A stretch of DNA of 64,000 bases, taken from Marsupella aquatica. Taxonomy: Eukaryota > Plantae > Marchantiophyta. Below the pieces are notes generated by a model. The model worked only from the letters and a program-made list of their open reading frames with translations, was not told the DNA's origin and did no database searches. A program made the position numbers and the translations under genes. The stretch is taken from the NCBI GenBank assembly GCA_973895155.1, contig OZ316899.1:4095241-4159240 (forward strand), read 5' to 3'. Shown here one piece after another: positions 2,694-59,497 of the stretch (position 1 is its first letter; each line of letters begins with the position of its first letter).

Positions 2694-2730
2694 TAATACG
2701 GTTTAAATTAGACATTTCACTAATTCTGGA
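2694..2730 (+). repeat. Left TIR of the 17-kb element
   Basis: taatacggtttaaattagacatttcactaattctgga; reverse complement of 19804-19840 with 3 transitions. Confidence 0.9.
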
Positions 2731-4171
2731 AAATTCTCCCAAAAATGGAATATTGAAAAGTGCTTTTTGGAAATTTAGAGAAGGGGTTTTGGAATTTCTA
2801 AAATGAGGTTTTGGAATATTTAGTTTAGAGTTGTGGAATTTTCAGATTAGAATTTTGGTATGAACACAAAGGGCACCTTGTCCATTGAAACTGTCAATTT
2901 TCTCGTTCATCCTATCGAGTGCTCGTTTTATATAGTGCAAATCTTTGTGGAGCTTGTCCTTATTATCGACAGATGCAAAGATGAAGGAATTTAAAATCAA
3001 ATGTGCTAGAGCCCTTTTTATATTGAACTTTTCTTCCATAATATAAATTCCTTGATTTGATGGGTCAACGGTCTAACTATCAAAGATATCGCGGATCTTT
3101 CCGCGTATGACAAGGGACTTTCTATAGAGCCCTTACTTTCTGTAAAATTCTGGATATCTTCCCCCCAAAGCCTGAAACTCCAAGGCCTGGGATACCAACC
3201 GGGGGGCAGGTTCGCTGTCAGATGTTTTTTCGTCAAACACTTTTGACCTTTCACCTTCACCCATTTTAATTTTCACGACCTAGGACGGGCTATGCCTTTC
3301 CAATTCTGATATTCTACGCTCAAGAGTGTCAACTCTCTGAGTGAGGAGCGACAGAGACCAATTCTGTGAATCACTGATCTCTCTCATCACCCCATAGATG
3401 ATTCACAATGTTAACAAAATCTCAAGAGGAAGGCCTCTGGGTCAGAAGCTTGGCCCAAAGGGGGGGACTTCCAGAGCCCAAGGATTAGACAGCCGTCAGA
3501 CAAGGAATCTGCGCTAAGCTGAGCTCTATTGGGTAACTTGATAATCGTGTCCTCCAAAGTTTTAGGAAAGAGGTGACACAAAAAAACGAGATACATCAGA
3601 GCTGAAGATACCATGCAAGTGATTGACAAAGTGCACACGATTTTGAAAAGGAAAACTTTTCATTATTCACAAAAATATTGAGGTTGGAAGAGGCATCCCT
3701 CAAACCAATGCCATCGATGCCAAAACTGAATTCAAAATCTGTTGGGAAGATGACTCCAACCAAACTACCCAAGGAAGCTGGCACCGAGATGTGGGTAAGA
3801 CAATCGCTGAGGAATAGAAGGACCTCAACGCTCTACGCGAGACCAGCGCAAAAAGAGATTTGGGTTTAGGGTTGATCTACAATCTCACAGTTGCAAGAGG
3901 CATTCCTCCAACCCTCGTCTAGGTTCCTAAGCACCTTTCAGATGAGAAAATCTCCTTTACCAGCTTAAAGTAGAAACAAAAGTGAGCCAACACAATCTAA
4001 ATTTTCCGGAGTCGAATATCTACGCGAGACTCGTGTTATCCTCAAAATGCTTCAAAAACTTAAGACTCTCCCAAATGGCTTCAAATCTTAATCGTTCCAC
4101 GAGGATGGCATCCACTCATCCGAGTTTGGAGTGGATTTGCGGCAGTCAAGGAATGCTTCCTTTGCCCAAGC

Positions 4172-4618
4172 TCAATGGTCCATCAGAGCCCCCTGCTGCT
4201 TCTTTCCCTTCCCATAGTAGACATTGACGTTTTCCTTCATGCATCTTTTGTTCACAGTCTCCCTGGGCATCTTTCCGGCTTTCTTCGCACCCGATGCCTC
4301 CTGCCCCTCCATACGCGACACGGAATTTCCTCGGCTAATCTTTGAATCGTCCATTTTTGATTCTCCAGGTGTCTTACAATCGGGAAAGCCACAGGTATCT
4401 CCATCAAGTTCTGACAAGAAAAACCTTTTACATTGAGCACACTCTCTTAAAAAAGATCCTTCTTTGTCAGAATTGCAATTACGGTCAAACCCATCCGCAG
4501 GCGTGTAAATCTTGGATGACCTCCTTGGGGCGTTCCCCTCCTTTGAGCTATGAGGCGGGGACACCTCTGTTGAGTTGTTGGTCACGCCAAGGTCCTTGGA
4601 CGTCACTAGTGGATTCAT
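4172..4618 (-). CDS. Hypothetical 148-aa cargo protein with Cys cluster (CAQC..CGFPDC), possible Zn ribbon
   Basis: Open ORF downstream of the transposase with a CxxC-x13-CxxxxC arrangement; no family recognised. Confidence 0.35.
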   Translation of the reverse strand: MNPLVTSKDLGVTNNSTEVSPPHSSKEGNAPRRSSKIYTPADGFDRNCNSDKEGSFLRECAQCKRFFLSELDGDTCGFPDCKTPGESKMDDSKISRGNSVSRMEGQEASGAKKAGKMPRETVNKRCMKENVNVYYGKGKKQQGALMDH

Positions 4619-4869
4619 CGAGAGAACTCAAGAGATCCTCTCAAAATCAGATTAAGAAATATGAAAACTAACACAAATCAAATGACGACAGAAACTAACA
4701 TCAACAATAGATTGAAAGTGAATCAGAAACCACAGAATGGGAAAAGAGAGTGAGAAGTTCCCTATTTGGACAAGACCAAGAAACGGCCATGTCGCTTTCA
4801 GTAGACCCTAGCCTAGATACCAGAGCAAGGCCGCTCTACACGACCCTCGTGCAGATCCAAATGGTCTAC

Positions 4870-7800
4870 CTAAACCTTCCTTGGTAAGGCAAAAGGAGGA
4901 GGCCCTACGCGAGCCTCGTGCAGAAACAAACACTCCGTTAAGAAGTTCTCGGAAATGTATGCATTCACGCTTTCAAGAATATGAACTGGAACTTTCACTT
5001 TACCCTTTGCCTTTGAATTCCAGCCATTGATTGTAGACATTGCGAGGAGCCAGTCGTGTCGGATTGTAGGACTTTGGTAATTTGGATCAACTTCCCAGGA
5101 CTGTTTAGAATTGAAGCAATCCCGATATCGTTCAGAGTCTGGGACATACGACTTTTGATGGATAGGTCTCCACCATTCCACCTCAAACTCCCCAGCATGA
5201 GCATCATCCGGAACCCGCACAACGCGATCCATGGCTCTTCCTAGCCAGAATCGAAGGGGAGTTGTTTGTTCGAATTCATCTATTGGACGAAGAATAACAA
5301 ACGTATCCTTTTTAATATCCTCAAGTGGGGAGAATCTTGATCTTTCTCGCTCCGAGCGATGGCCAACAAATATTGTCTGTCTCTCATTTTTGATCTTCCT
5401 GAAGTTCACGCTCAAGGCTGCTCATGACATCATTGACAGAGCCAATGTTATTCTCAGAAATCCCAACCTCAGCTCGATATCTGGTTCCATGGTTAGTTCT
5501 TGGCCAAAACCCATCGAGTAGCAGATAGTCCCTCTCCAGATTAGGCGCAGAGCATAGGGAACCTTTGAAGACCCTGATGACATTTTCCCAATACTCAATT
5601 TCCGGGGATCAAAAATGATATCCCTCTGATGTGACATCTTTCCAGGCGGCTCTTAGCCATGAAACGTAATGAACGAGGTATTCGAGAATATCACTCGCTC
5701 GCTTATGAGTCGACTCCATTTGTTTTGAAAGAGGATTTCCGGAGGGAAACACAGAGTCCTTTCCAGTAGTTTTCCAAGTGGAGTGACCTTTTGCAGGTAG
5801 CCATGGCAAATCAATTTTCTCCCGATATTGATAAACAGGTGTATTTTCTTTCATTGAAAACAAGAACTGCACAGGGGCTGACTGACCTTGGATCTTCTTC
5901 ACATAAGAAGAAACATAAGCTTTGTATCCGGTAACCTCCCGGATGAATCTTGGGACTGGATGCTTCTTCTCACACTCCCAAACTTCAGCCATCAAACTAA
6001 AGAAAGTGTTAACTCACGATTATAAATCCGAATTCCTACTCGTGAAAAGAATGCGTCAACGTCCTCATGAGTATGACCAACCATCAGGAAGGAGAGGGTA
6101 ACGGACTCAAACACTCCTCAAAGAACAAGCTCACTACAATATGCGATCACGGTTTGATTCTTATTGTCCTTCCCTGAATTGTCAAGTTGGAGGTGCAAAT
6201 GGCGTGGAAGTGGTCGAAAAGAATCGGAGGACGAGGGTTCCACGCGAGGCTCACGCGGAGCTTCATTTTCAAGTCCTTTAAAATGGTCGAAATCCACATT
6301 CTTCCTTTCTAGATAGCCAATCTCAAAAGCCCGACGATCTAAAAGCGCAACAAAAATAGGATTAGACACGTCTGTGCTCCACAGCGATAAGTCTCCAGTC
6401 TTATCCCCAGAGAATGACTCAAGATCCCTGAACAACTTTGAAAGAGATGAGACTGTGAAATCAGGATCACTCGCCCACAATCCACCAAGTGCAAAATGGG
6501 CATAGATTCTGGGATCCCGTCCATGCGTGAGCATTCCAGTCAACGTCATCGGTAACGAAATTGATTACCCGCTTGACTTTTAAGAGTTGAAGTCATTTTT
6601 GGTATCCCTGTTTTGGCTTGATCCATTTTGTCATGAATCACCGAGAGATACTTCTCTGGCTCTTGATCTGCTGCCAGTTTGGCTGCATAATACATGCTTT
6701 GCCAGGACTGTTGTTCCAGCATGTGACGTTCTCTTTTGGCCTTGATTTCAAGAACAACATCTTGTCTCTTCTTGCCTCGAAGAGTCTCTTTGATTGTAGT
6801 ACAAAGATCGCATTTTGAAAAATTGCTTCGATCAGGAAACTGAAAATTGGGAAACTTTTTCTCGAATATCTTGTAGAAAGTAGCGATGACAGGAGAAGAA
6901 GCTCCAAGATTCTTGTTAAGCTCGCAAACCTCTTCATAAACATCTTTCCTCTCGTAGCTTATGGGAACCCTATACACGACCTCCTGCTTTCCAGACTCTC
7001 CAATTTTATGGAGATGAGGCATAGGCTTTGCACATTTCTGGAATACACTTCGTATAGACTCCACAAACAGCGTGACGTAGTCTTTGGTTTTCATTGATCC
7101 TTGGTTGCCATCAACGCCAACTTTTGCCCCATTCCGATAGTGACTATAGATTGAATAGAAGGTTCCTCTGGAGAAACCATGGATGGTCCAAAACCCTTCT
7201 TTACAGACATGTGTCCCACAAAAAATAATCATCCCGGCCTCTATAGTTTCCGTATCCCTCCCGTGTAGATGGTTCAAAACGTACGTCTGTTGATCGGCGT
7301 GAGAGAGACCATAAAATTCATCCCTAATCTGATTGACCACTTCCCACTATTGTCTCCTACAACAATTCTTTGTGCAGCACTCAACCTAGAAGACAACATC
7401 AACAGATTCTCGAGTCTTCTTTCTGTTATGCCTTCTATGAATCTTCTTCCTTTCCTTCTCCTCAGGAGCCTGCGGGTTGCGACATTGATTATTATAGCCT
7501 CGCTTTGGTTTAACATATGATACAATTGCTCGCTCAGGATTCAGGAATTCGTTCTGATCCAATAGATCGCTTAGCAATTGCATTCCAGGCTCGATCTGAG
7601 TTCTCCGCAAAGGCCATTTGATTGTGCAAGGCATTCCCTCAACAAAATAAGGGAACGTCATCTTTGAGATGTTGTTGTCGGCGGCCAGCACTTGTGAATA
7701 TATTGATCCCGACATGATCATCTCCAACTCTCTCATTGTTAATCGATGCTTGAGGGTGCGGATTCGTGATACACCCTCGAGCCAGTAGTGTCTCATCATC

Positions 7801-8289
7801 GTCTCCATAAAGCAAAGCAAACTTCTTGAACCACCTACTTTGATAGCTCAGGTCCTCGCTCAAGAGAACATTGTCCTGACTATGGACAGTGTCTCCCGTG
7901 GCATCTTGCTCCCCAAAACCTGCTTCCCGTTCTAGAGGAAGCTCCTCTTGGTTGTCACCTGGATAAATCGGGCGATGGCTTTCCGCAAACCTGACGCTGG
8001 ACCGATCCCACAGAATTACTGAATTTAAGCTTTCACCGACCAGGTCCGCCCCTGCGTTTGGATAAGGTAACTCAGCAAGGTGGAAGAATGCATCCTCAAT
8101 AGAAACACTGATTCTATGCTCGCCAATCAGAATGTTGTGACAAGAGTCCGAGGGAGTAATGCTGAAAACCGTCCCACCCGCAACCGGTTCATCGTTCAAT
8201 AAGAGATTAACTCGATCCCCAAGGGAAAACATATTCTTGACCGATTCGAGGTTAACAGTAACTTTGACACGACTCTCATGTGGACACAA
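4870..8289 (-). pseudogene. Sola-like (DUF7869-type) RNase H-fold DDD/E transposase with N-terminal En/Spm TnpA-like modules
   Basis: Motifs VCKEGFWTIHGFS, FSKCDLC, IHDKMDQAK (D1), LQLDNSGKDNKN (D2) and FLMVGHTHEDVD (read manually at 6055-6090). In-frame TGA at 6118-6120 and frameshifts near 6546, 6000 and 5420. Superfamily label from motif resemblance. Confidence 0.8.
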
Positions 8290-8590
8290 GACGAGAATTA
8301 TTCACCGGCAGGAAAAGACCTGGTTAACCAGAATAAAACATGCACGTTAGTATCCATCAACACGAGGCTCGTGTAGAATTATTAATGCATACAGCTAGTG
8401 GAAGGAAACACAAGGAGGTTCGATGGCTAGGCGAGCCTCGTGTAGAGCATCAGCTTAGGTCTAAACATCTCCCAAAAGTAACCGAATAACACAATCATAT
8501 GCATTTATGACAAAAAGTCCCACAAGAAGTAAGGAAAGGACCCACTATTATTCGATGCTTCACTCTAAGAGAGAAGGAAAGTCCAACAAG

Positions 8591-8669
8591 GTACAAATTC
8601 CAACAGGGTAAAAGGTCCACCAGTGTACAAATTCCATTAGGGTACAAATTCCAACAGGGTACAAATCCC
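8591..8669 (+). repeat. Four copies of gtacaaat(t/c)cc upstream of the transposase
   Basis: Copies at 8591, 8625, 8642 and 8659. Confidence 0.8.
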
Positions 8670-8951
8670 CAATCCATGTAATATCACATTAAAGAACCAC
8701 CCAACTGATAAATTGTGTTACAATTGAAGTCCAATTCATCAAGACCAAGACATAACCCATGTCAGGACCCTCAATCGTCCTCAATTAAGAAGAAATGAAG
8801 TCTAATTCTAAAATTAGGGCAGTTATGGAAGAAATGAGGTCTAATTCCTCTTTGAAATCCTAAATATCCTATTACAGTACCCCTATTTAGTAGAACTTTT
8901 GAAAGAAATGAGGTACAAATAATTGTCCTAAAAAAACATTCTCCAAGAGTG

Positions 8952-9011
8952 ACAGGAATGAGACAGTCATAGGAATGAGACAATCACAGGAATGAGACAG
9001 TCACAGGAATG
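8952..9011 (+). repeat. 17-bp tandem repeat x3.5 (acaggaatgagacagtc)
   Basis: Read directly; lies in the divergent intergenic region. Confidence 0.85.
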
Positions 9012-9618
9012 GAATCCCAGAAGGGATGTACCGATTGGGCACCCAGAAGCAGTCCTTGGACTCAAACCCATGCCAAGACCTGTCCTCAGAACCACCCGTG
9101 CCAGAACTTGTCCTCAGAACCATTCACGTCTGGCGAGAGAATGACTAGAGAATCAGGACGACTAATCGATAAATACCATTCCCAGATAGAAATCCCGAAT
9201 ATAATGGACAAAAATGATAGGGTGGCCGCTCTCCTAGATCGTCGTGTGGTCCGATTTTCCGATATTTTGGTGGCGCAATTAATCATGTCAGATAATGACA
9301 ACAGATATAATGACAAAAGAATAAGCACATATGCTCGAATGTGACAGGCTGATAGCTCTGCATGATTGTCGTCTGGTAAGATTCATCAATATTTTTGGCA
9401 GTGCTCTTAATGATGTCTTCACGCTTCACGCTGGCCCATTTTCACGCTGGCCCATTCCTCGTGTCAGGTATATATTTCAAGGAGATTCGCTCATTCACTC
9501 ATTCCTTCATCCTTGCCCTCTCGCTCATTCTCCGCCCTTTCACTCATTCGTCTCTCCCTCTGAGTTCTGCTCAATTCCGTCCATATTTTGCAAATTCTCA
9601 CACGTGCGAAGAGGTTTC

Positions 9619-10450
9619 ATGGCGAATCTATCCGAATCGGAGGTCCAGGAGATGTCGGTCGCAGCTTTCACCAGAGTTGAAGGTATTTCCACACGACAAT
9701 CGTGTAGATCTTTAGTTTTTCTTTTCGTTGTTTGTTTTTATTTCAAATTTCAGCGGTTCCTTCCACACGAGTCTCATGTAGACATTATCCTATTAAATTT
9801 ATTTGTGTTCTGCGATACCTAGTACTAAGTTTTCTACACGAGACTCGTGTAGATGAGCTCCAATAATATGCCGTGAATGCACAGATCATGCTTGAAGGTA
9901 ACCCCCAGTCTTTTTCTCCGAATCAGTTTTAGACGTTTTTTATCTCTAGCTTAACGCGACTCTCGTGTAGATCCCGGACGATCCTCATCCCATCAGTTCT
10001 TCCGTATGAAAATGCGTTGGAGTAAATATCATTTCCATTTGCTTTCACGTGACTCTTGTGTAGAGCATGTTACTCACCTGAGGCTCATTTGTTACCTTGA
10101 AGGCCAAATCGACAATGCCTTGAAATATTTGAAGTCGATCAAAGATAAACATGAGAAGGAGTCCCAAATGACTGAGGATGTCCTCGAGGAACTTGAGACC
10201 CTACGAGAAATTGTGAAGGAGAAAGATGAAGAGATTTGTTCGATTAGAAAGGATTATGCTGGAAGATATTTTCGAGCTCGCGGAACCATCTTCAGACATG
10301 TCAGGAGTTGTGCCTAGTGATGAAGGAGGCCGCCAAGCTTGATGAGCTCCGTGAGAGTCAGATACAGATGCTCACAAAGAAGCTGATTATCATGACGGCC
10401 CAGGAGGAAGGACACCTCCAGACTATCAAAAGGCTGAAGAAGGAAGCAGC
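9619..10450 (+). pseudogene. Probable spliced small coiled-coil cargo gene
   Basis: ATG at 9619 (MANLSESEVQEMS..), donor-like gaag|gtattt at 9683 and gaag|gtaacc at 9898, and a Glu/Lys-rich heptad ORF at 10080-10317. Exon structure uncertain. Confidence 0.4.
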
Positions 10451-12239
10451 CTAGAAGACATTTCCCTAGAACTCATCTGTCAAGACTTAGTACTAGACGA
10501 GTTGTTTAGTTGGAGATCGAGGCACCCAGATGAATATGTGCCCCAACTTTAGAAGATGGTAGTCGAGCGGGAAAAGTCCATTTTGGTCGAATGAGTTGTT
10601 TTCTGGATGGATTGTCCATTTTTGTGAATAATAAAATCTCGGCATTTGTTTTGACATCTTGGACTCTGTTCTAAATCTTCCGTATTGGTTCTTTCCTAGG
10701 ATTCCCGTATGTTTGTTTCAGCCACCCGTGCCTACCGCAGCCGCTAAGTCGAAGCATTGTTAGCCACCAAAATCCAATCGTCAATTCATGGTCTTTTGAA
10801 ATGCGTCTGGAGGGTGACGCTTGGAGGTGTTGGTTGCGGGGGATCATTATTGCCAAGCCCAAGAGGTTTTGGAAGTACTTGGGTGTGCTTGCCGATTGTA
10901 GGATTTCAAAAGCACCAGAGCACCAGAAGGGGAAGGTCTTTCTGATAGTGACAGTGGAGGACCGCGTTAATTCTGGATATAGAGAGTTCTCTCTTCCCGT
11001 TGAACAATATTGTTGCGCACATTGTCTTGAGCCAAATGATGCGACAATGAACATAACGTCCTTTAGGATTTTTTGATCCATCCACTCATCGTTTCATGGA
11101 TCCAGATAATATTCTCACTGCTGAGGATATTGTTTCAGGGCTGGGAAGGGTTAGTTTTTTGTTCTTCAAAGATTATTAATCTCACCTTTCTGCAACCAGG
11201 CATGTTGTTTGTCATGTCTCTATCTTTACCGGAAGATGAACTTCGGCAGGAGATCAAGATCATTCTGGAAATTGCTTTCCCAGATCCAGTTGACGAGGAA
11301 AGGATTAAATGTTAGGTTGCGATCCATCCTGTAGTGAAGGCCTTCAATTTGAATCAGAAAAGGCACGGACGTCATGGTGGTGGCCCAAATCTCAAAGCAA
11401 GCAAAGTTGTACAGGAACCTGGATCGTCGTCGAGTTCAGATTCAGGATCATCAAGTTCACAGGGTACATCAGATGAACCGAGCATTGTTCCCAGTGACTC
11501 TTTGAGTCCTGAGTTGGTTGGAACAGAGGAGATCTTTGAAGATGAGATCCAAGCCGTGGATGAAGAACTCGCGGAAGTGGGAGGCTCAGAGGAAAAGGAC
11601 TCTGAGACTGAGATGGAGGTGCAGAAGAAAAAGAAAAGAAAGCGAATGGAAGAAGACGCTCCTTCCAAGAAGAAGAGATTGTCTTCAAAGATTGCTCTTC
11701 CAGAGAAGGTTGGGAAAGCTAATGTCCCTCAGGCAAAAATCTGCACTAGCTCTACTGAGGTGAAAGGGCCACAGATCGCAAAGTCCAAACAACCACAGAA
11801 GAAGATTAAAGTGGCCGAAATGCCAGAACAGAAGAAGGCTGTCAGGAAGAAGACTCAAAAGAAGCAGGCAGTTGTGGAAGAGATAGCAAAACCCGTATCA
11901 AAAGGTGTCGTTAAGAAGGATTTGTCTCGTAAGGCTTCCACTGCAACACCTTCTGCTGTCGTGAAACAGAAGGTGCCCTCAAAATCTCAAAAGGTCAATA
12001 CTCAAGTGCAAGACGTATCCACAGACCATGGGGGGACAAGATCAGAGAAGTCCAAGCGTGGAAGGGGCCGCAAAAGAGAGACTGAGGGAATGGAAGAGGC
12101 ACCGGAAACTGGTGTCCCAATCCCAAAGAAACAACGTAAGAAAGTGGAGATGATTGAGATGGATGTCGTGGATGACATGGGAGAGATGAATGCTGACTCG
12201 AGTTCTAAAGTAATCGTTGATCGAGCCAGACTTGAGAGG

Positions 12240-12720
12240 GCAGAAAAGACTTTGCAGCAAAACCGATGCTGGTATTCTTTTGGGCTGTCAAAATTTTTCC
12301 TCGTTCCTTTGATGAATATCTATCCTCCGCCGGCAAAAATGAATGAGCGGTTACTCAATGAAGACCATGTCAACCATCTTGTTCAGTTGATGATTTCAAA
12401 TGCCGATCAGGAACCTTTGCCTGCAGATCTGGTGCCTTACAAGATGATTAATGGTGTTTACAGTCTTATCAATCTTTCCGTCAAAGATTTTGATTCTAAA
12501 CAATTATCCGAGTATCAATATTTTGCAATAAGTGGTCAACACTCGATTATGGCCGCAAGGAAAATCATTCGGAGTTCTCGAACACAGCCATCTCTGGTTG
12601 AAACTGCCAACCTCCTCAAATTCCATCGTGCAAGAATTCTCAAGGGGTCGACACCTGTTAAGGTGTTGGTTGAGATTTCACATGCAAACAACTTGCAAGC
12701 TGAAGCACGTCGTTTCTCGT
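12240..12720 (+). other. ParB/Srx-like domain (element 1)
   Basis: NERLLNEDHVNHLVQLM...YFAISGQHSIMAARK resembles the ParB/DGQHR core (SGQH at 12531-12542); the Arg of GxxR is Ser. Confidence 0.6.
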
Positions 12721-12821
12721 CACCATTCATCGACCAGGTCAGGCATGCAAGAATGCAAAATTCGGAAATGAATCGACCAGTGCGGCCAGTGCCGTCAGGG
12801 CAAAAATCCCAGGAATTCCAG

Positions 12822-12957
12822 GTCCGTTCTTGTTGACACCATAATTTCTTTTGTGGTCCACACGAGCCTCGTGTAGAATCCGAGGCTTGGCCCTAAGATA
12901 CCTTCTCCAAAGGTTTGGTTTACTGTGTTGTTCTTACCATTTGTTGTTGGGTTTCAG
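12822..12957 (+). other. GT-AG intron (136 bp, phase 0) containing one palindrome copy
   Basis: cag|GTccgt ... tttcAG|aat; splicing fuses ORF 11334 in frame with ORF 12925. Confidence 0.8.
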
Positions 12958-47549: not shown

Positions 47550-49496
47550 AGGGTATGACCATCGTGACAACATATAGTTAATAAATTTGCTGTTACAAGC
47601 AAAATTTGTGCTCGTAACAATAAAAATCTGCTCATACGAGTAATTCATTTACTAATAACAGTAAATCTGTTTACTCATACAAGAAACTATTTACTTGTAT
47701 GAGTTTTCCTTGTTGTTCAAAGTGTTCAAAAAGAGCTCCATGTTTTTATACAACAACCACATTAACATTCACTGGAATGCTAACATAATGGGGCCCACCA
47801 TTCCATCATAAATATCAGACAATATGTAGGTCATTATAAGAAGACGCGTTTATTAAAATGAGAAGAGGTATCCAAGCTTTAGCCCATTTTAGCTAGCGCC
47901 AAGCGCTAGCCATAGGACCTACATATTTTTGGAGAAGAAACGGGTACGTCTTTTGCCCGTTAGAAAAGACAAATTCAATTTAGAGCTGTTCAACATCACC
48001 AAATTGGCTAAATGTCCGTTTCATATTGTCAATTGAGTAGGTAACGGATTTCGCCCAATGTCAGAACTAGTTGACTAGATAATGTAGAATTGTGAAGACT
48101 CAACTTCAACACAGTCCTGAATACCCAATATAGATGTTTGCAAGGCATGTAAGGTTTTGTGTAAATGTGCCGACGGTAAAAATCCTCACATGAACAACAA
48201 GGGAAACAAAAAATCTACACCCAATAAGAGGCTACAGTCCTCTCATGTTCATGTGTTCTAATACAATACTGCTTTCCCCACACATTCCCACTCGTGACAT
48301 CTCTCTGGCATATGAGTCTCATTACTTTTGTTTCAGAAGCTTCAATCTTCTTGTAATGTGTTTGAGTTAGATTCACTCTTTGCAAGCACTTCCTTCCATT
48401 TCTCAAGGGACATCTCAAAATTGGGTCCGCTAAATTGATCCTCTCTTGGAACAAATTCACATCGATGCGTAAGTTGGATGGGGATGACTCCTAAGGAATC
48501 TCCCCTCTCTCCTATCCCAGTTAGTCCTTGTTCTCTCAAGAATTGGATCTTGCCCTTCCTGGAGACTGGTCCCTCTCACAATTGGAAGAACGGGTGGTAC
48601 ATTGGGAATGTTTGAAACCTCTTTGTGGATGACTTTTGTGACATTTATTGTTTGGGAAAAACCATATCTGGTCCGGATGTGGTTCTCCTCTAAAAAATCT
48701 ACATCCTCTCATAGATATTGCGACAACTAGTTCTGGATTTGGAAACCCAATCTTCTTTACTCAATTTTGACATTCATCGCGGCTCCCTCTCCAACCGAGT
48801 GTTCCATTGCAAGCAGGATCAACACCACGTTTTGAAGTTTGTTGAAGCTGCCACACACCTGGATCTATGTCCTCACCCAACCCACTTCAATGCACCCGGT
48901 ACACCTCTTAGTGGCGCTGCTAGTCCCATCATACACTCAGATTGCCTCACACACACACACACACACATCCATGAGAGAAATGAGGTCTGAGAGAAAAACT
49001 CAATTAGATTCAAAGATGTGCACAAAAGTTCACTGAGAACACTTGATCCAAACAATAGGCCGGAAGGCTATCTACTTTAGATTGCAACGTGCTTGCCCTA
49101 CAAGCCCCTGCTCGCCATGCAAGCTCAATCTTGAACCTGAGCCCGACTCACTCCAGATTGCAACGGCAGATTGGACTTGAACCAATCCCGTACTTGCCTT
49201 ACAAACTCAATCCTAAACTCAACCTCCTTCATTGCACTTCATTCTTGGGGGCACATACAGATCTCACACCTCCATTTCAGAATGTCAAGTTACGCATGCA
49301 CACTTGACTCAACTTCAAAGCTGGTACCAGGCCTAACGACGATCTACCCCAGACTGCAATGAGGCCTGGCCTCATGCTTGCCCTGCAAGCTCAGCTCTAG
49401 CCATAAATCCCTTAGTGCTCTCTATCGGACAAAGGCCGGGACTCCCCATGGATCACGTAGCCTTGCCAGACTAAACTGTAAATGCTCCTCTTGCTG

Positions 49497-49823
49497 GAGG
49501 GTTTTCACCGTGACAGCAAATAGATTTACTGTTATGAGCAAAAAAAATCCTGTTTCGAGCAAACATTTACTATTACGAGCAAACTAGACAATCTAAAAAT
49601 GTGTCATTAAAAGTCACAATTTTCAAAATAATTCAAAATACAACAATTTTTTGCTAGTGTAAGGCAATACCACTACTAGCTCTGGGCGCTAGCCAAAAAA
49701 TATTGACTCACAAAAAAAATTTAATATTTTTTTCCCCAAAAACAATTCCCCAAAAAATTTCAAAACTTTTACCACCCGTTTGTTGTTACAAGTAACTGTT
49801 TGCTGTCACGATGGTTATGCCCC
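49497..49823. mobile_element. MITE (327 bp) of the Mutator-like family
   Basis: 8-bp TSD tcttgctg/tcctgttg (2 transitions); ends match the TIRs of 47550-59489; internal tagctc-tgg-gcgcta. Confidence 0.85.
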
Positions 49824-50569
49824 TCCTGTTGCCCCTCAATCAGTATATGAGCTTCCCTAATGTGCTCACCGCAAATCAAATTGAAATTCTCCCCACAGTT
49901 TACAATCACCAACACATCACCTATCACCAAGGCTCTATATCGAGGGAAAAGAACCCAGTTGTGTTGCCTACTAGAAAGAGCCACAATCCAGCTTGCAAAC
50001 CTGGCCAACAGTTGTTGTGAAGCGTGGCTGATTACTCCCTGAGTAATAGCACAACCAAGCTCTCCCCAACACACAACTTCCAAGCCCAGTCTTCCTTGCA
50101 CAGAGCTCCTCCTTGTTGCTCAGTCTACGTGAGATCACACAACTGAAGTCCCCCCCTTGCCTCTACTAGGGGGCTGCTCTATATACTCTCATACTGAGCC
50201 CAAATGGGTGGATACTATGCTGTCGGAGCCCTATCCCAGCCCTAACAGAACCTTCACTATCTCTAACTATTGAACCCTAACTAGCAGCTTTATTTCTATC
50301 TCGAATTGGCTATGTATTTCGGATTTGGCTCTCCTTCACAATTTTTGTGAGCTTGCGCCTCCTCTCACAATTTTTCTATTCAACCATCTTTTGCGTGGAT
50401 AGCAGCGTTGGAAGCGGCTTGAGCTCCTCTTTCCAACGAGGTCAATAATAGCCAATTTGGGCAAATACAGAGAAAATTATGCCCCCTCAACCGAGAAGGG
50501 GTATACACTTCTACGCTAACTCGAGTTACATAGCTAATCCGAGTAGAGCTTACCCGTGGCCTCGGGCTA

Positions 50570-51006
50570 AGTCGCTATCTGTGTCTGTTGTCCATTGTTT
50601 GCTATCCGTGTTTGCTATCCATGTCTGTTGTCCATGTCCGCTATTCGTGTCCGTTGTCCATGTCCACTATCCGTGTCCGCTATCCGTAGCCATTATCCGT
50701 GGCCATTGTCCGCTATCCGCTATCCGTGTCCGGTGTCCGTGTCCGCTATCCGTGGCCATTGTTTGCTATCCGTTATCCGTGTCCGGTGTCCGTGTTTGCT
50801 ATCTGTGGCCGTTGTCCGTGTCCGCTATCCGTGGCCATTGACCGCTATCCGTGTTCGGTGTCCGTGTCCGTGGCCATTGTTCGCTATCCGTGTCCGGTGT
50901 CCGTGTCTGGTGTCCGTGTCCGGTGTCCGTGTTTGCTATCCGTGGCCATTGTCTATGTCCGCTATCTGTGGCCGTTGTCCGCAATCCGTGTTTGTTGTCC
51001 GTGTCC
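50570..51006 (+). repeat. Compound simple repeat (ctatccg / tgtccg / tggccat units)
   Basis: Read directly; related tracts at 20800-20950 and 32310-32530 in copy 2. Confidence 0.9.
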
Positions 51007-51962
51007 AAACAAAGGCACACTTTTGCGGGGTAGCAACAACCATGAGGGACTCCCATATCTCCTTCTTTTCTTCCAAAGACATTTCCTCAATTGAATCCTC
51101 ATAGAGGGCATTGGTTAAAGAGTCGGTCGCTGCATTCTTTATCCCTGTTGGCGTAGCTCATGGATTTGCTTGGCATTCCTTTGCTAGGTGAGTCTTTGCT
51201 ACCTTTTCAACTTCTTTGGACCACACCCGATGACTAGGATGGTTATGAAATCCCATGTGCACAGCCAGCCAAGACATGTGCGCCAAATGTGTTGCATCCA
51301 CTTTGGCTGAAGGATACATATAGAACATCATTGTCGGACACGACCTCGTACACATCCGAGGTTCAGAGCAATGGTGACAGACAATACCACCTTGTGGGAT
51401 AAGTTCTCCAACTCAAAATGGTCCTGAGAGTTTAGGTGTTCTTGCCCAAACCTGGTTGTTCCTAGTCTTCTTGTCTCTCTAGAAATGACAAGAGTTGTTC
51501 AAGCAAACCCGTACACTGAACCTTTCCAAAATCCCACATCTTCTTTGGCAAAACATTCAAAGATGTTTTGACAATGCATGTCCAATAATAGCAATCCTTC
51601 CCGCGGTCCATGTCTTTAAGCTATTCTTTCAAGTTCACGCAATTGACAGGAGACACCTCAAACACAATGTTGTCCTTGTACGTCATCGGTAGCCTTGGAA
51701 CAATCTCATGCGTGAAATCCTTGTCCCTAATGAAACAAGATAACTTGTTGTATCCTTTCAATTTTAGGATAGTGTCCATAGCACTTTGCCGATACACAAC
51801 TGGACCTTCGCAAACCTCCATCTTCATGACCAAGGGATACGCCGGAACCCTTTCAGGGGCCTCTGTTGGAAGGGGTGAATTTCTCCCCTCGCCTTTCGAA
51901 GTGTCCGAGATGTTGACAACATCAACATTACCAAAACCGGCCATGGATCTGCCGATGCTTGA

Positions 51963-52293
51963 GGGGTATGGCGCGCGTGACAGTAAACAGGAAATAGGTT
52001 TATTGGTACCAGGAAAATTTTTCCTGTTACCAGCATAAAGTTACTGTTACCAGGAAAAATAACCATGTCAAAATATTTTCTAAAAAGTCTCATTTTCCAA
52101 AAAAATCTAAGTTATAACATTTGTTGGCTGGCTTTGGGTGCTAGCAAACATAAATAAAATTTTGAAAAAAAACTTTTTTATCTCCCAAAATTATTTTTTT
52201 AAAATTTTTATAAAAAAATTACCACTCACTTTCCTGTTACCAGTTTCTGTTTTCTATTACTATTTGCTGTTTTCTATCGTTTGTAAATACCCC
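51963..52293. mobile_element. MITE (331 bp) inserted in the MULE's own minus-strand gene
   Basis: GGGGTAT..ATACCCC termini; perfect 8-bp TSD ATGCTTGA (51955-51962, 52294-52301). Confidence 0.92.
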
Positions 52294-53238
52294 ATGCTTG
52301 AGTATCTTCCAAAACAAAGACCTCATATACTTTATCTGGGTACATCATCCAAAATCTAAGACCATCAACAACATCGTAGAATATCTCACTTCCCTTCAAA
52401 TTCTTAGGGACAAGAGACACTGAGAGAATAGACTCTTTTACAACATCAAATCTTATCCCCAAGTATTCATTGAAAACCCTTTTTGACTGAGATTTTGTGG
52501 AAACGGTAATTGTGATGATATCCCGCATGTACTTGCGTGTGACAATGATTGCTTGACCCATGTCACCGAAAGAGAATATATAATGGATGCCAAACTCCCC
52601 CTCAATCTATTTATGGCCATTTTGCTCTACCGGGTTGATAACAACATTATAAACGTTAATGATAAAGTAAGATACGTTAAGTGTTTGGACGATGTGTATC
52701 AATTGAGTTTTGTCATTTGTCAACAGCTGGATTGAAGCAACCGGCTGGTCTGAAGTTTAATAGCGCCAGACGCTACTTTTATAGAAGTAGAACAAGTGAA
52801 CAAGGGAAGCGTGAATGTGGACCCCATATAATAGCGCCTGACGCTACTTTAACGGAGGGGAGGCAAATCTGACCTCGGAATAATAGCGCTTGGCGCTATC
52901 AATTATTATCCATAATTTTTAACTCCAACACCCAACAGGACATCCTGGCATCCGTCCAAATACACACGTGTGCATTAAAATTTCCACGCTCACAAGATCT
53001 GAAAATGCACGAACGCATCTGAGGCGTCTATCACATGATTGGAAAAAATTACATCTAGGATGTCCATCCGGGTTTAAAACGTACACATTTCTCTTGCCAA
53101 AACAACGCTGGCAAGATTGCTTGCCTTCATTTGTCATTCTTCACTCTCAGTGATTTTCTTGCGCTCCCGCCTCCGGTTTTTGTCTCAAAAGTGTTCCATT
53201 CTTCACTTGATATTCCAAAGTTCCTTGTTGAAGTTGTC

Positions 53239-56200
53239 ATGGCTCTACCTTAAGCCAAGGGGAAGGAGCAGGTTGTAGTCCTCAGTGACAACGATGGAGA
53301 GACTGTCATAGTGAAGTCTCAAGCTAGGCCTCCCACCCAATCCTCTCAACAATTGTCAGTCCCGATATCGACAAAGTCTCAAGCTAGGCCTCCCACTCAA
53401 TCTTCTCGACAGTTGTTAGTCCCATTATGGGCCAAGGGGAAAGTGATCTCAAAGAGCCAATCTAGTGGAGTCCCACCAGAGGGACCTCTTCACTCAAAAG
53501 TAGCAGTTCAACCCGCCTCCCATAAATCTTTGGTCTCGTCGGCAAAGCTTTCTACTTCGCATCTATCACCTGGACCGCCGACCAGTTCTTCAAGTAAGAG
53601 CAAAGGCAACGACAATGCCTCGGGGACCAATGACAACTTGTTTGCAGTCAAGGAGGGCTTCGCTGGGGTGTTGGTTCAAGCAACTCCAACCACGACTCTG
53701 ACGCTTACAAGCCAAGTTGGTGGGAAGATTGAATGAACACAACGACATCTGTGCCTGCATCAAGCAACCAAATGAAGTAGTCTGTTGTAGACATCCACCA
53801 CCATTTTCTTGCAGTAGCCACTCATTGTAATCGTCACTCTTTTGGTAGTAAGGTAGTGATGGAATGTAGAGGGAGATTTCTCCCCAATTTTTGACAAAGC
53901 TTCAGGTGGACGCTGGGCTGTTTATGTTCTCATTGGAATAACTTATGTCTAATGAATTGGAGTTCAGTGTCGTTTGTTCATCCCTTTTACAAAGTTTGTA
54001 TGAATTAGTGCAGGTTATTGTAAGTTGTATATTATGAGAATTTGTCTCTCACAGGCGCAAAACTGTCAGAAGTCTTCAAAAGGCTTCCAACGATGGCTGT
54101 CGGTGTAAACTCAAACCCTAAACAAGTTTCATAATAGCGCTTGATGCTAGCATTGAAATGCTCAAAAATTATCCTTCCCGTACCCGATTCATTCTCAAAA
54201 TATTATTGGATATGCATGAATTTGGGTGATGCTTGAGTGATGTTTGAGTGAATTTGGGTGATGTTTGAGTGAATTTATGATAGCGTCAAGCGCAAGTATA
54301 ATTTTAAGGATAAATTGTTGCAAATACTATGATTTGCGTCCTCCTTGAGCAAAATCCCTCGTGATTTTGTAAAAACTCATGAGTGATGGATTTGTTAGCG
54401 CTCGGCGCTATTCAAATCACAAGTTTAATTTGATTGATATACAATTCTTTTTTATAGCGCTTGACACTATTAATGAGGTCCAACCGGTCAATGGTCATAT
54501 TTTTAATGGTAACATTCAAGATTATTGGATACGTTGCCAAAATTTGGCGCAATCAATTGTCCAATGAGAATCTGCCAAGTGTTTTGCTCCGTTGGTGTTA
54601 TGGTTAAACACTATTATGGGGTCCTTGGGACTACATCTCTTAACCCTTTGCTGGGACTTTGCGCTTGTGGGAGATATGTAATTTGGCATACCTGCCCCTT
54701 GCAGCAGCCCGTTTGACCGTGACATTCTGTACTTGAGTTTGTTACTCCGCACTGACTCAAGGGCTCAGGGCAAGGCTCAGGAGCGTATGACATTGTCTGA
54801 CGTTCTGATCAACGTCGCCACCATCTCTCTATTGGGTAATACAAGGATGGGAGATAATCATGCCGGTCATTCCGAGTCCTCACAACCCTCTTTTTTAGGC
54901 TCTGTGTACACCCATTGCAAGACTCGATCGGCTGCATCTCAGCCATATTCAGACTTTGGCTCAACTCTTCCAACCGCGCAATCAAGAAGGGGAAGAATGG
55001 ACATAGCAAAGGATGTCGCAGGGTTGATTTCAGTGTTGTTGGACTTTTGATGGACGATTACATCTAGAAGCATGTTTTATCCGTTGGGAAAGATTTCCGG
55101 GGATTGGAGAAGGAGCCTCCATAAATTCCTCTTTGTCAATTGCTTCCTATGGAAATTGTGCGGACATTGTAGAAGTAGAGCGCCTCCATCGACAAGTTGA
55201 AGGAGTCATTCCGGATTTTTGGATACAATTCACAAATGGGAATGCCATTCTACGTTCAGCCAACAAATGTAGATGGGGTTCCACAAATTTGTACTAATGA
55301 GATTCAAGCCTCTTGGGATCCAATCTGGGTGGCCAAGAATGATAAGTTTGAGGAAGAGTGTGACGCTAATCCGGATTTCAAGGTTTTGAAGGACAAGATG
55401 TTTTGTATCTTTGATGGAAATCACCATTTGTATTTGTGGTAGATGTGACAGTAGAGTACCCTAACAACATTAAGTACCACCCTCGTGTGACTTGCATTAT
55501 AATTTCCAATGGAGATAAGGGTTCCTGTGGAGCTCGAGGCTGCCATGGACGCTATTTACCAGTAAGTCTCATTCATGTATTGTTCAGGACAGTCTCATTT
55601 AATCTGACGTACATGTTCACGTCAAGTTTTGATGTGATATTATCTTTGGCATTTTACTAGCGCCTAATGCTACTAATTTCCATGTTAATTTCCACGTAGG
55701 TTGGGACAAGCTGTCGTGGAGCCCTCTTGGATTCTTGATGCAGACAAAATTTCTCAGCTTTTATCGCACGATCTTGAGCACTACAAACCCCTCATTGATG
55801 CTATGAGTTTTGCAAAGTTTGAAGCATTCGAAAGAAGACTCGTAAGGGTTCTTGGTATACACACAAGATGCCACAAGATGCGCTCATCTACATTTTGTGT
55901 GAGAACAAGATTAAATCTAACTTACACAAACCAGTTCAAAGTGGATATGGATTTTGCAGCTGCCTAGGGGACTCCGTGGTCAGAAGAGGAGACGCAGGAT
56001 AGGCATGAAGCTATGATGAAGGAAGCAACAAAATTCTGGGCAATCAAAGTAACAAAGATCACTCCATTACTCCACCCTGATTTTGGTGACTACTTGGGCA
56101 CATGTGCTGAAATGTTTCCCGCGACAGAGAAGAACAAAAGAGAAAAGAAACTTGATATAGTTGTTTGCACTATGGATTGCGCTTGCCTGTTTACTGCAAT

Positions 56201-58860
56201 GACTTATCTTGATCCAAAGTTAAGGTGCACCCTTCTTGTCGCCCATTGTACTCCTGAGATTCGGAAACAGTTCTTCCATCCGGCTAGTGTGAACGACGAT
56301 CCTATAAAATAGTGGTGCGATGCCTGGCATATCTGGAATTTTGTGGAGGAAATTGCTACTGGATTGATCCTTACCTCTCTAGAGTAGGTTTTGGACCGGA
56401 TGCCAGATGATCATCTCACAAAGTCTGGTTGTGACTCCCTGGATGTTCTCATGACGTCCATTATTGAAGAATTCAAAACATTTGGAGATCTTGTGAAGGC
56501 CAAAATTTTCAATATAATGTGACCGTCAAAATTCGCAGGCAAGGAGGACTACACTGAACGGAACCGGAAACAAGCCAAACGATATGTTACCATTTCTATA
56601 TGTGGATGGAGTTGCAATCTCCAGAGGTTTTGTGGGCTTACCCGGGTGCATTTTAAAAGTGGGTGATGATCAAAGATGGTGACCATCTTGTTTGACATGT
56701 ATTTGATAGACCCGGATGAGGAAAAATTTCCACCACGTGCCTTGTCAGAGTGGGAGAGGCTCCACTGCCCATGGTATTTAGACACCGACAGATGCGATCT
56801 GCCTTTTGACAAGGCGGAGAAAGATGCTTTCATGAAGTTGCAAAGTTGCAAATCCCAGCAAGGTATGTCTCGGAGATGAAGCAGGGTCTTGAGATTGAAG
56901 TGGACTCTTAGACAATGGAGTTGTAGAAGAAGTGCAAGACTATGGTCGTGCATGTTGACCATAGCCAAAAGCCAAGAGTGAAGACCAAGAATGAATCTGC
57001 AGCTCCAAGTGAATCAACTTGGTCTCTTAAAAGAAGCAAGTACCCCCGATAGCCCTTAGTTAGCGATTGGCGTTGTTATTCATATGAGAGATTCAGATCC
57101 CTATTGATACTAGCGCCGAGCGCTATTACTACAACCAATTCAATTACTAACATATCTCTATCTTTCAGGGGGAAGAAAGTCGGATGCCACCACTGATGCA
57201 AAGGATGACGCTACTCCTCAAGCATCTGAAGCTAACACTAGTGCGAAAAATACACCAGATCCGGGAACCCCTGGGGAGAGTGAAAAGGCAATGGTTTGTG
57301 TGGATGCCACAAGTATGAAGAAGAAGAAAAAGAGAGGCCCAATTGATGACAGGCTTGGATCTTCTTCTTGTGATTCAATTGCTTCAACCGGATTGCAGAG
57401 AGATGTAGGGAATTTCAAACAAAAGTGCACTCAACATTGTTTTGTCGAGTTGAGTGTTACAAAATGTTTTGATTCCTTGTTTAACAAGGGAGAAAAACCA
57501 GATTGGGTTTCTACTATTGAAGGTTGTGGGAAAGAGCTTGTGAAGTCTGGTGATCAAGCAAAAGGGGTTGTCCAAGGGGGAAAGGAAAGAGGTGCCAAGA
57601 CAATGGATCCTTTCCTGGTAGATGATGGATTGCTGGCAATTTTGCAGAGGGGCGACTATGACCAAGTATGTGAAGTCATTGCAGCTTGCCAAGATTCAAA
57701 GAAATTTCAGTGTATCTTGACACACAATGTTGTGATGGGCACCCCAATGTACAGGCGTCGCTCGGATATTCAGGTACGATAGAGATGTCTCCTCTTTATA
57801 ATAGCGTCGGGCACTACTAAGAGATTTTGGTTTTGTGTTGTCCTTTTGCGAGTGAAGGGGACGCTAGCACCAAGCGCTAGTATCAACATCCTCTCGATGA
57901 AAGGTTTGTGTATTATCCAAGTAGTGTCTGATGTTATACTGATCAAAATGTAATTTATTGTGCAGATTTTTACGCTTACTCTCAATGTTTTTGGACGTGT
58001 TTCGTCCAAAAGGATCCCAAATTTTGGCCCCTTTCACATATAGAGGATCCTTCAATAACCAATCTCATTGGTTTTCCCATTCCCAAAAATGATCCTCTTC
58101 CGGAGCTAGCGTTTGCTGGTGATTCAAGTCTGCCTATGGTTTCATGCAGTCAATTTTAGAATTAACTACCCTTCCTGGGGATATTGTCATGGACTGGATA
58201 GTTGGGGCCGGGAGTACATATATTTGTTGCTGGAGATCATTGTGGGCGATTTGTAGTTGGGATTGAAAATCAGAAGGAGTTTCTTGACATTGCCACAAAA
58301 GTTTTCTTCGGACATCTAGAGAACAAAGAAGCCTCCACGTCCTTGCCTCTACATAGGCAGGTGGGAAGTAAGAAGCATGACAGACTCCATGTTGTTCTTT
58401 ATTTTGATTTTGACAAGGATAATGATGGAGGCAACGATACTCAATAGTCCAAAGATGATGGGGCCTCAAAGAATGTGGTGCACATTGGATCTTCTGAATC
58501 TGATGATAGTGAAGAGTCTTCTGAGTAATGATCTTCAACTTCCCTGTCTATCTTTTAACCTTTTAAGTGTTATGTTAGTGTCTCCAGAATTCCACCATTT
58601 TCCAGGATCCGACTAAAGAAATTGGATTCAACTTGCCAGGTCTGAGTGGAATCTTTGGAAGCACTTTCAATTGCGAAGGAAAGTTGCTAGGAATGTAATA
58701 GAAACCCCGGAGAAGCCATTTGTCCTGCCTTCTTATGTTGAAAAGGCGGCTCAAAAGGCAGATTCTGTTAGAATATTGACTTGGGAAAGTAAAGGCCTCA
58801 GGCTCAAAAGGGGCCCGGATAGACATTGCGCAGAGCAAGTATGTAGACGACAAAGCTAAG
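53239..58860 (+). pseudogene. Multi-exon cargo gene: low-complexity N-terminus, ParB-like domain, beta-class amino-methyltransferase-like domain
   Basis: ATG 53239. VRTL..DKLKESFRIFGY..KMFCIFDGNHH (55413-55427). FMQSILELTTLPGDIVMDWIVGAGST/FVAGDHCGRFVVGIENQKEF (58141-58285, one frameshift). GT-AG introns at 55562-55699, 57040-57168 (tactaac branch) and 57774-57965. Confidence 0.75.
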
Positions 58861-59497
58861 TCTACTGATAGATCACAAAGTAGTGAAGAAGAATAAGAAC
58901 TAGATACAAGTGATTCAAAATCTGATGTCTAGCTATACTTTTAAAATAGTTATTGGATATATGTTATGGCTATTTTACAAATTAGCGCCTGGCGCTATTG
59001 TGAGCACATGTAATTTTGATGGGTGTTTATAATGGGAGACATGTCATGTCCATATTTTTTGTTCAACTCTAACTTCCTTTGGGAAGAGGAGAATCTCAAC
59101 TTGGAACGCATTGTAATTTGGTGATATTTGAATGCGGATGCCCCCCTTCACTATTTTTCATAAATTGACATCACATAGTCTGTAATTGAAGTCTGTTATT
59201 TTAGCTATGTTGTTGAGTTGTATACTAGCACCAGGCGCTAGTATACAAATCTTCTTCGACATACATTGTGCATAGAGATGGGTCGATTTAGATTCTGCTT
59301 TTTGTAGGGCTGTTTAACTACTGTAGTGTTGGGTGCTAGTATCACGACGTGTTTTAAGATATGGGATATTAGAGGTTTCAATGTTATTTTGTGAAAGATG
59401 GAGGTGACCTAGAGGATTGTTTAGAGCATACATTAATTTGCTGTTATGAGCTTTACTGTTTGCTATTTTGCTGTCATGGTGAAAAGCCTCTTTGGCC

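Follow-up and report, generated by a model that had tools for sequence, protein, structure and literature searches.

Does a giant transposon of a land plant encode a protein that recognizes the transposon's own noncoding DNA? The question is raised by a 64,000-nucleotide stretch of the liverwort Marsupella aquatica (GenBank assembly GCA_973895155.1, contig OZ316899.1, positions 4,095,241 to 4,159,240 of the forward strand; here called the window), in which two DNA elements, element 1 (2694-19840) and element 2 (47551-59489), each combine a dispersed palindrome of their own with a long accessory gene. A preliminary description had proposed that both genes join a ParB-like core to motifs X and I of a beta-class amino-methyltransferase (MTase) and that the two elements represent a new system of self-recognition. 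Following up that proposal with profile searches, structure models, and comparisons with related loci, we put at about 45% the probability that the accessory protein of element 1 binds as a dimer to the palindromes of its own element and in this way controls or shields transcription of the element's genes.

In element 1, a family of giant DNA transposons of liverwort-type plants, with three genes each, is represented by a decayed copy. It is delimited by 37-nt terminal inverted repeats (TIRs) that are 92% complementary, and its accessory gene as a whole occupies 11334-15611 on the plus strand, opposite the transposase gene. Its features, including the copies of its palindrome (palindrome 1), are as follows.

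2694-2730: left TIR, 37 nt, resembling the TAAG... termini of the Calypogeia locus L001
4019-4924: three copies of palindrome 1 (4019, 4835, and 4904) within the 3' portion of the transposase gene, clear of the conserved coding blocks
4172-8289, minus strand: transposase-like gene in several exons or open reading frames (ORFs), PF25273 (DUF7869; Pfam E = 1.8e-11 on 6118-6549)
8357-9971: divergent intergenic region, where palindrome 1 occurs six times (8357, 8426, 9688, 9762, 9833, and 9951)
11334-12836, plus strand: accessory gene exon 1, a low-complexity N terminus followed by a ParB/Srx-like domain (12186-12797; AISGQHS at 12525-12545) recognized with AlphaFold2 and Foldseek
12857-12877: copy of palindrome 1 in the intron immediately after the ParB-like exon
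12925-13380, plus strand: accessory gene exon 2, a conserved helical linker domain (family hidden Markov model [HMM], E = 3.8e-34, and alignments to relatives)
13380-14195, plus strand: N-terminal part of a beta-class amino-MTase-like domain, with LAIVDMTHS at the motif IV position (13653-13679) and a motif X-like segment (14157-14195), recognized from the relatives' profile and fold
14196-14198, plus strand: in-frame TGA between motif X and motif I, across which relatives align collinearly
14199-15611, plus strand: motif I-like VLDFFTGGQ (14220-14246), a linker, and a Ulp1/C48 protease (C-terminal part, 15219-15611) (family HMM E = 5.6e-14; Peptidase_C48 E = 3e-24)
15613-15633: copy of palindrome 1 directly past the accessory gene stop codon
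18158-18775, plus strand: remnant of a NIF/FCP1-type phosphatase gene, the third gene (tblastn with the NIF genes of L002, L021, L022, and L023, E = 4e-23 to 3e-18)
19804-19840: right TIR, pairing with the left TIR

The palindromes had been described as private to each family, and on this point the description was right. Palindrome scans of the window allowed up to two mismatches; TACACGA-N3-TCGTGTA was matched 11 times, always within 4021-15631, versus 0.04 matches expected, and the full 21-bp site, TCTACRCGAG-N-CTCGYGTAGA, is confined within the window to element 1. The palindrome of element 2, TAGCGC-N3-GCGCTA (palindrome 2), has 18 matches in the window, 15 of them within the element (47894-59240), versus 0.5 expected window-wide, and both motifs were also picked out by an unbiased palindrome count. 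We considered whether the palindromes are parts of a longer repeat unit and rejected this, the flanks of the copies being unrelated; they are dispersed short sites. Their mostly noncoding placement likewise held up: in element 1 they occupy the spacer between the divergent genes, the intron that follows the ParB-like exon, and the 3' ends of genes, with one weak copy falling in coding DNA.

The closest named relatives of the accessory gene are found in another liverwort, Calypogeia fissa (L001 and L028). Five related lineages were compared, namely element 1 of the window, L001, L028 (the closest to the window), L021, and L029. The element 1 transposase shares 29 to 53% identity with minus-strand ORFs of L001 (1534-5290) and with L028 ORFs, and the order transposase (minus), accessory gene (plus), NIF gene (plus) is kept in the window as in L001 and L028. 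L002, L021, L022, L023, and L024 likewise have the accessory-NIF pair, and wherever a locus extends far enough downstream of the accessory gene, a NIF gene comes next. An own palindrome was found in all five lineages, that is, in five of five with enough noncoding DNA. The NIF/FCP1-type genes and palindromes of the relatives are as follows.

L001: NIF/FCP1-type gene 13132-14028; palindrome GCCTCGAGA-YNR-TCTCGAGGC, 15 matches versus 0.6 expected
L028: NIF/FCP1-type gene 13417-14358; palindrome CTCGCGA-N3-TCGCGAG, 11 matches versus 0.15 expected
L029: palindrome GCTCGACA-YNR-TGTCGAGC, 15 matches versus 0.04 expected
L021: NIF/FCP1-type gene 4520-5605; palindrome GGCTCGCRAA-A-TTYGCGAGCC, a four-copy array upstream of the ParB exon
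L022: NIF/FCP1-type gene 4374-5483
L023: NIF/FCP1-type gene 3273-4184
L002: NIF/FCP1-type gene 3572-4510
L024: NIF/FCP1-type gene 3703-4428

Not only the presence of a palindrome but also its placement recurs: all five lineages have upstream arrays, a site lies in the intron behind the ParB exon in the window, L001 (9727), L028 (9813), and L029 (6797-6949, one of three arrays in that locus), and sites at gene 3' ends are found in the window, L001, and L028. The table of motifs by elements is diagonal, with cross-matches solely between half-sites that are one base apart. A core, CGCGA-N3-TCGCG, is common to the window, L028, and L021, and the half-sites of distant relatives differ. A protein and a DNA site that diverge together should give half-sites that are related in closer relatives and different in distant ones, as seen here, and the earlier proposal that motif and protein diverge together was borne out over the five lineages; the pattern would fit any of the co-inherited proteins as the binder. 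It also bears on a rival explanation, in which host factors use the palindromes as cis-regulatory or structural DNA, or the palindromes are inert sequence specific to the family, in either case with no functional link to the accessory protein. Binding of the palindromes by that protein is indeed putative, and CpG-rich palindromes could attract methyl-binding or silencing factors of the host; however, half-sites read by a host factor should not change between sister transposon lineages of one genome, as they do between L001 and L028 in C. fissa, and the layout persists at approximately 30% protein identity while the flanks are unconserved. We regard this explanation as distinctly unlikely.

What kind of protein, then, would read these sites? 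For its ParB-like region, the AlphaFold2 model (predicted local distance difference test score [pLDDT], 79.5) had as its top 25 Foldseek matches in PDB exclusively structures of Noc, three ParB proteins, sulfiredoxin, and PadC (probability, 0.91 to 1.0; best E = 2.9e-3), with KorB and SbnI matched lower in the list. Helices follow the ParB-like core, and the ParB alignments run over 160 to 180 columns, but with a root mean square deviation of 8 to 12 Å. P0028, L024, L021, and L001 conserve the region, in which A[IV]SGQHS, R..L...TP, and S.F.D...HAR do not vary; because its polar residues (SGQHS, R, D, and HAR) are invariant despite an overall identity of approximately 33%, the domain likely has a selected function. 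On the strength of the structure models, we assign a ParB/Srx-like fold to the element 1 accessory protein with moderate confidence. A profile of this region compared with PDB yielded fimbrial matches only, which were judged spurious. The spreading along DNA postulated in the preliminary description is not what the domain suggests: the CTP-binding box II, GERRxR(A), which is needed for clamp closing and spreading, is absent, its position being taken by the invariant A[IV]SGQHS.

The MTase-like part was assigned via relatives rather than by a direct match of window ORFs: searched directly against Pfam, PDB, and NCBIfam, the ORFs of the window gave neither ParB nor MTase, with Ulp1/C48 as the sole Pfam match in the element 1 accessory gene. 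Word-indexed protein searches found no relatives, and an exhaustive phmmer search was required; with ORF 13380-14198 it returned 25 relatives at approximately 30% identity. Among nine relatives, six matched PF01555 (N6_N4_Mtase) weakly, one of them, P0007, above the cutoff (29 to 30 bits versus 26.7), and a profile of the nine matched the beta-class adenine methylase M.RsrI (1eg2) over motifs X and I with an E value of 6.9e-8. The AlphaFold2 model of P0007 (pLDDT, 72) matches CcrM, M.RsrI, M.PvuII, M.MboIIA, and the rotifer N4CMT over approximately 300 columns (E down to 7e-9; 7e-9 to 5e-7 for CcrM, M.RsrI, M.PvuII, and N4CMT), with METTL14 chains also among the matches. The window pieces were assigned to this family by HMM with E values of 1e-46, 4e-34, and 6e-14. 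The circularly permuted order of the beta class (motif IV ... X-I) is present in the family, the X-I stretch in the window reading ...NIKPSRIIKAIIL / VLDFFTGGQ (14157-14246).

Its catalytic loop, in contrast, is gone. At the motif IV position, all 20 aligned relatives have a strand whose last residue is D, with F[SA]R next (LAIVDFSR or the like), and the window has VDMTH, the sequence (D/N/S)PP(Y/F/W) being found in neither the window nor any aligned relative; the S-adenosylmethionine (AdoMet) motif I, canonically DPFxGSGTT, reads DFF[ST]GGQVL in the family, with one glycine position shifted. The element 1 family domain keeps the methylase fold without the catalytic loop, and since the (D/S)PPY motif is replaced family-wide, the writing of N4-methylcytosine (4mC) or N6-methyladenine (6mA) is unlikely here. 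These residues also count against the mechanism originally put forward, in which an active amino-methyltransferase loads at the palindromes via ParB, spreads, and marks its own element with 4mC or 6mA. A complete beta-class fold with recognizable motifs X and I would agree with such a writer, as would the near-canonical GAGST loop of the element 2 remnant (see below) and the annotation of algal relatives as predicted 4mC/6mA methyltransferases (PMC12477816). Without PP(Y/F) at motif IV in the window and in 20 of 20 aligned relatives, without the box II arginines, and with the N-terminal half of the element 2 domain not detectable, we give this mechanism little credence, less than any other considered here.

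A metagenome scan with the MTase-like alignment returned one true relative and 17 loci matching motifs X-I only; at least 10 of the 17 are bacterial methylases of canonical form, in which motif IV of the DPPY/DPPF type is intact, and those ten served as our reference profile. A metagenome contig, L020, carries behind a microsatellite-like leader a degenerate motif X-I, 'GDTVLDFFGGTLTS' (214-465), which hints at further eukaryotic MTase-like relics. As to origin, no phage match was found, and a plasmid origin was not borne out: matches to plasmid methylases were weak and limited to motifs X-I, and the one examined is without a ParB domain.

Element 2 is flanked by a perfect 9-bp target site duplication (TSD), CTTTGGCCA, at 47542-47550 and 59490-59498, and is inserted inside a second DUF7869-type transposase reading frame. 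Its features are as follows.

47551-59489: element 2, with imperfect TIRs (GGGTATGACCATCGTGACA... / ...TGTCATGGTGAAAAGCCT) and a 9-bp TSD
49497-49822: 326-bp deletion derivative of the element 2 family (miniature inverted-repeat transposable element), with one copy of palindrome 2 (49675) and its own 9-bp TSD
52759-54469: palindrome 2 in two clusters upstream of the element 2 gene (52761, 52832, and 52884; 54135, 54281, 54396, and 54455)
55179-55439, plus strand: candidate ParB-like exon (FDGNHH at 55410-55427), unconfirmed, with motif-level resemblance only
55656-55674: copy of palindrome 2 in a gap rich in stops (55440-55688), following the candidate ParB-like exon
55689-57779, plus strand: decayed long reading frame in the same frame as 55179-55439, with 11 scattered in-frame stops and no family match
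57109-59242: palindrome 2 in reading-frame gaps and at the 3' end (57111, 57802, 57865, 58983, and 59226)
58123-58444, plus strand: remnant of beta-class MTase motifs X-I-(II/III), frameshifted (58123-58263, then 58202-58444; DWIVGAGST at 58192-58218)

With a further copy of palindrome 2 at 47894, near the left end, the layout resembles that of element 1, with upstream clusters, a site in the gap after the candidate ParB-like exon, and sites at the 3' end. Three weak matches lie outside element 2, in copies of an unrelated repeat, R3. The element had been called Mutator-like and said to differ from element 1 in its transposase, a statement that we could not uphold: no ORF of 47551-59489 matched MULE/MuDR (MULE, Mutator-like element) or any other transposase family, and the label is drawn from the TSD, the two independent insertions (element 2 and its derivative) having 9-bp TSDs, within the 9 to 11 bp of Mutator-type elements. 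The copy may be nonautonomous, or its transposase gene may have decayed.

Similarly, the symmetry between the two elements did not hold up. Motifs X-I are present in both genes: in the six-frame translation of the window, 58123-58263 is the best match to the profile of ten bacterial methylases (E = 1.2e-4) and 58202-58444 is the second, collinear with the first. The top Pfam match of the remnant is PF01555 (E = 0.011), its only PDB match is M1.HpyAVI (E = 0.02), and its motif I, DWIVGAGST, is near canonical, though frameshifted. The N-terminal half of the MTase domain was not detected with either the family HMM or the bacterial methylase profile. The gene frame has 22 stops over 55179-57779 versus 48 to 50 in the other plus-strand frames. 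The ParB core, which in element 1 is seen at the level of fold, was not recovered in element 2: searches of 55179-55439 with Pfam, NCBIfam, PDB, the family HMM, and hhalign (probability, 0.4%) showed no ParB/Srx similarity, and the protein database yielded no homologues of it. Homology of the element 2 gene to the element 1 family is unsupported except in motif X-I (tblastn, family HMMs, and hhalign on three regions).

How do these observations bear on dimeric binding by the accessory protein? We favor it because the palindromes stand at the promoter, in the intron, and in the spacers, at least 1.3 kb from the ends, because the polar residues of the ParB-like domain are invariant, and because the catalytic loop is lost. 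Its strongest competitor assigns the palindromes to the transposase, as internal enhancers of synapsis or transposition, with the ParB/MTase-like protein acting elsewhere, e.g., against host defense or in modifying other DNA. The transposase co-varies with the palindromes as much as the accessory gene does, the 326-bp derivative keeps a copy of palindrome 2, and copies lie 250 to 350 bp from the ends of element 2 (47894 and 59226). However, in element 1 no copy of palindrome 1 is subterminal, those nearest to the two ends being 1.3 kb and 4.2 kb away; clustering at promoters, in the first intron, and at gene ends is a regulatory layout; L029 has its three arrays with no transposase detectable within 6 kb upstream; and published arrays of Plavaka elements adjoin the ParB gene. 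Taken together, a role as transposase sites seems unlikely.

Several observations weigh against dimeric regulatory binding by the accessory protein as well. The fold match is moderate (E = 3e-3; template modeling score, 0.3 to 0.6), no ParB was found in the element 1 region 12186-12797 by sequence profile (Pfam, NCBIfam, and PDB), and no DNA-binding helix-turn-helix (HTH) family was matched in the ParB-like part. As judged from the sequence, the AdoMet loop, DFF[ST]GG, may be only partly degenerate, with a noncanonical enzymatic activity possible. The identification of the accessory protein as the palindrome binder is putative, the transposase and the NIF protein being co-inherited with the palindromes equally, and the palindrome retained at 49675 in the short element 2 derivative is compatible with a cis role in transposition. 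The ParB part of element 2 is putative. Finally, both copies in the window are pseudogenes, with an in-frame TGA in element 1 and many stops plus a frameshift in element 2, so that neither has a function at this locus.

With dimeric binding by the accessory protein as our preferred reading, we propose that the protein would bind, as a dimer, the element's own 19- to 21-bp odd-spaced palindromes, which stand at the bidirectional promoter, within the first intron, and between genes. Its MTase-like domain, without the catalytic (D/S)PPY loop, would most likely serve in reading DNA or as a scaffold, and not as a writer, and the bound protein would regulate or protect transcription of the element's genes, in an operator-regulator or anti-silencing circuit. 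The bound protein could also recruit the fused Ulp1 SUMO protease, an end of the gene that is common to the window and L028 only, and the co-encoded phosphatase of the C-terminal domain (CTD) type. Element 2 would then carry a far more diverged or an independently acquired analogue, with a private palindrome and an MTase-like remnant, now a pseudogene. A bolder version, in which giant transposons of land plants encode a programmable operator-regulator pair, ParB/Srx and a catalytically dead beta-class MTase reading a lineage-specific 21-bp palindrome and delivering a tethered SUMO protease and a CTD-type phosphatase to the element's own chromatin for anti-silencing, half-site and protein co-evolving, strikes us as doubtful.

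Element 1 had been described as Sola-like, a putative assignment. DUF7869 (PF25273) is the only transposase-type family detected in it by Pfam, and no clean 4-bp TSD, as in Sola elements, was found around it (2694/19840). The TIRs of L001 are approximately 80 nt long and begin ...GCC adjoining TTAA on both sides (926-935 and 19902-19911), and TTAA is a possible target duplication of that element, to judge from these termini. The segment between the accessory and NIF genes, 15808-18156, is a later insertion, which includes the following repeat.

15808-17499: nested copy of repeat R3, unrelated to the system, with 89 to 93% identity to 32314-34371 (inverted) and 48871-50544

An inverted repeat spanning the right TIR (17848-18156 / 20164-20795) was considered as a rival boundary and rejected, since synteny places the NIF gene, with its start at 18158, in element 1; this pair of approximately 310 bp, 81 to 89% identical, is tentatively read as two opposite copies of another repeat. 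R3 itself is an unclassified GC-rich repeat whose three copies are 78 to 93% identical over aligned segments. They bear two weak palindrome 2-like sites (16063/34100 and 33098), and the copy inside element 2 is itself interrupted by the 326-bp derivative. Adjoining that copy, 50574-51006 is a degenerate tandem array of CPCPLSVSAIRV-like units in several frames.

The window as a whole is repeat-rich plant-type DNA, in which DNA transposons, several in number, are nested inside each other. Element 2 and other insertions of approximately 8 kb split the second, diverged DUF7869-type transposase gene (plus strand; 37932-38933, 47167-47547, and 59475-60044), for which neither a ParB/MTase-like partner nor an array of palindromes was found in the window. 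A Copia long terminal repeat (LTR) retrotransposon (20971-32303; 294-bp LTRs at 20971-21264 and 32010-32303, 96% identical; gag, integrase, and reverse transcriptase on the plus strand) contains a nested minus-strand long interspersed nuclear element (24502-29353) with RVT_1, an endonuclease, and an ORF with the plant-typical DUF4283 and zf-CCHC (zinc knuckle). Two direct repeats of 979 bp (39432-40410 and 43060-44038), 99.6% identical and 3.6 kb apart, resemble a young LTR-like or duplicated structure, and an ORF between them (40709-41320, minus strand) has faint similarity to the ZSWIM1-3 helical domain. Additionally, the window ends carry a diverged direct repeat (761-1450 and 61795-62473; 74 to 77% identity).

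Is any of this without precedent? KorB acts at dispersed OB operators on plasmid RK2, and the element 1 family resembles KorB/OB and ParB/parS in having a ParB-fold protein and about a dozen dispersed palindromes near promoters of its own mobile element; unlike them, it is without a GERRxR box or a recognized HTH, sits in eukaryotic chromatin, and has no partition ATPase, and we claim no membership. VANC proteins of the Arabidopsis VANDAL MULEs recognize short, nonpalindromic cognate motifs in noncoding parts of their own family and act in anti-silencing; the likeness, an element-encoded factor with cognate noncoding motifs that diverge with the family, is one of layout, and the VANC motifs differ in not being palindromes. 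The inactive METTL14 supports METTL3. For the MTase domain of the DIRS1 retrotransposon, in which catalytic and substrate residues are substituted, binding rather than catalysis has been proposed (PMC4738411). Like both of these, the element 1 domain keeps the MTase fold with catalytic residues substituted; unlike them, it belongs to another MTase clade (beta-class N6_N4) and has another partner domain.

Closer parallels come from algae, and the system is not new: as a hypothesis it had already been published, its presence in unrelated superfamilies included. Sola1-1_Ec32 of Ectocarpus (21.5 kb) carries a gene of 1,104 amino acids, ParB-like plus DNA methyltransferase, opposite its transposase, and the same self-binding, self-modifying hypothesis was proposed for it (PMC12477816). 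Compared by description, element 1 agrees with this published Sola1 element in having the accessory gene opposite the transposase, and the window, L001, and L028 share with it a ParB-like N-terminal domain plus an MTase-type domain in a giant element; the element 1 family differs in its land-plant host of liverwort type, its degenerate motif IV, the Ulp1 fusion in two lineages, and the NIF gene always downstream, and its palindrome arrays are documented here, likewise set against Sola1-1_Ec32 by description. In the Bostrychia genome, Plavaka PAG3 joins a ParB N-terminal domain to a 2-oxoglutarate (2OG) oxygenase and is flanked by tandem inverted-repeat arrays across Plavaka families, and homologues of PAG3 are known from red algal giant elements of both Plavaka and Mutator type (bioRxiv 10.1101/2025.02.11.637652). 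As in PAG3, a type that spans unrelated superfamilies, a ParB-domain accessory protein is accompanied by family-specific inverted-repeat arrays adjoining its gene; unlike in PAG3, the effector is MTase-like and not a 2OG oxygenase, and the repeats are not limited to adjacent tandem arrays but occur dispersed in introns and at gene ends as well. Neither report mentions a NIF partner of ParB-type accessory genes (PMC12477816; bioRxiv 10.1101/2025.02.11.637652), and we found no experimental test of the self-recognition hypothesis in the literature.

Element 1 is a decayed land-plant member of the ParB-accessory module type described in algae in 2025. To that type, our analysis adds land-plant members, five natural protein/palindrome pairs, a site whose place in the intron is conserved, the loss of motif IV, the fusion to Ulp1, and a constant NIF partner. 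ParB-domain accessory genes of giant algal transposons have been known as annotations only, and they are here extended to land plants of the bryophyte type. To our knowledge, VANC is so far the only plant example of a transposon that recognizes or protects itself through its own sequence-specific proteins. The five pairs, with related but distinct half-sites, provide material for binding tests with cognate versus swapped sites and, if the programmable operator-regulator is real, would be a natural set of orthogonal DNA-binding modules. Loss of the catalytic loop shifts the expected function of the accessory protein from writing a mark to reading DNA, and the NIF partner, together with the Ulp1 fusion in two lineages, points to the transcription and SUMO pathways as its targets.

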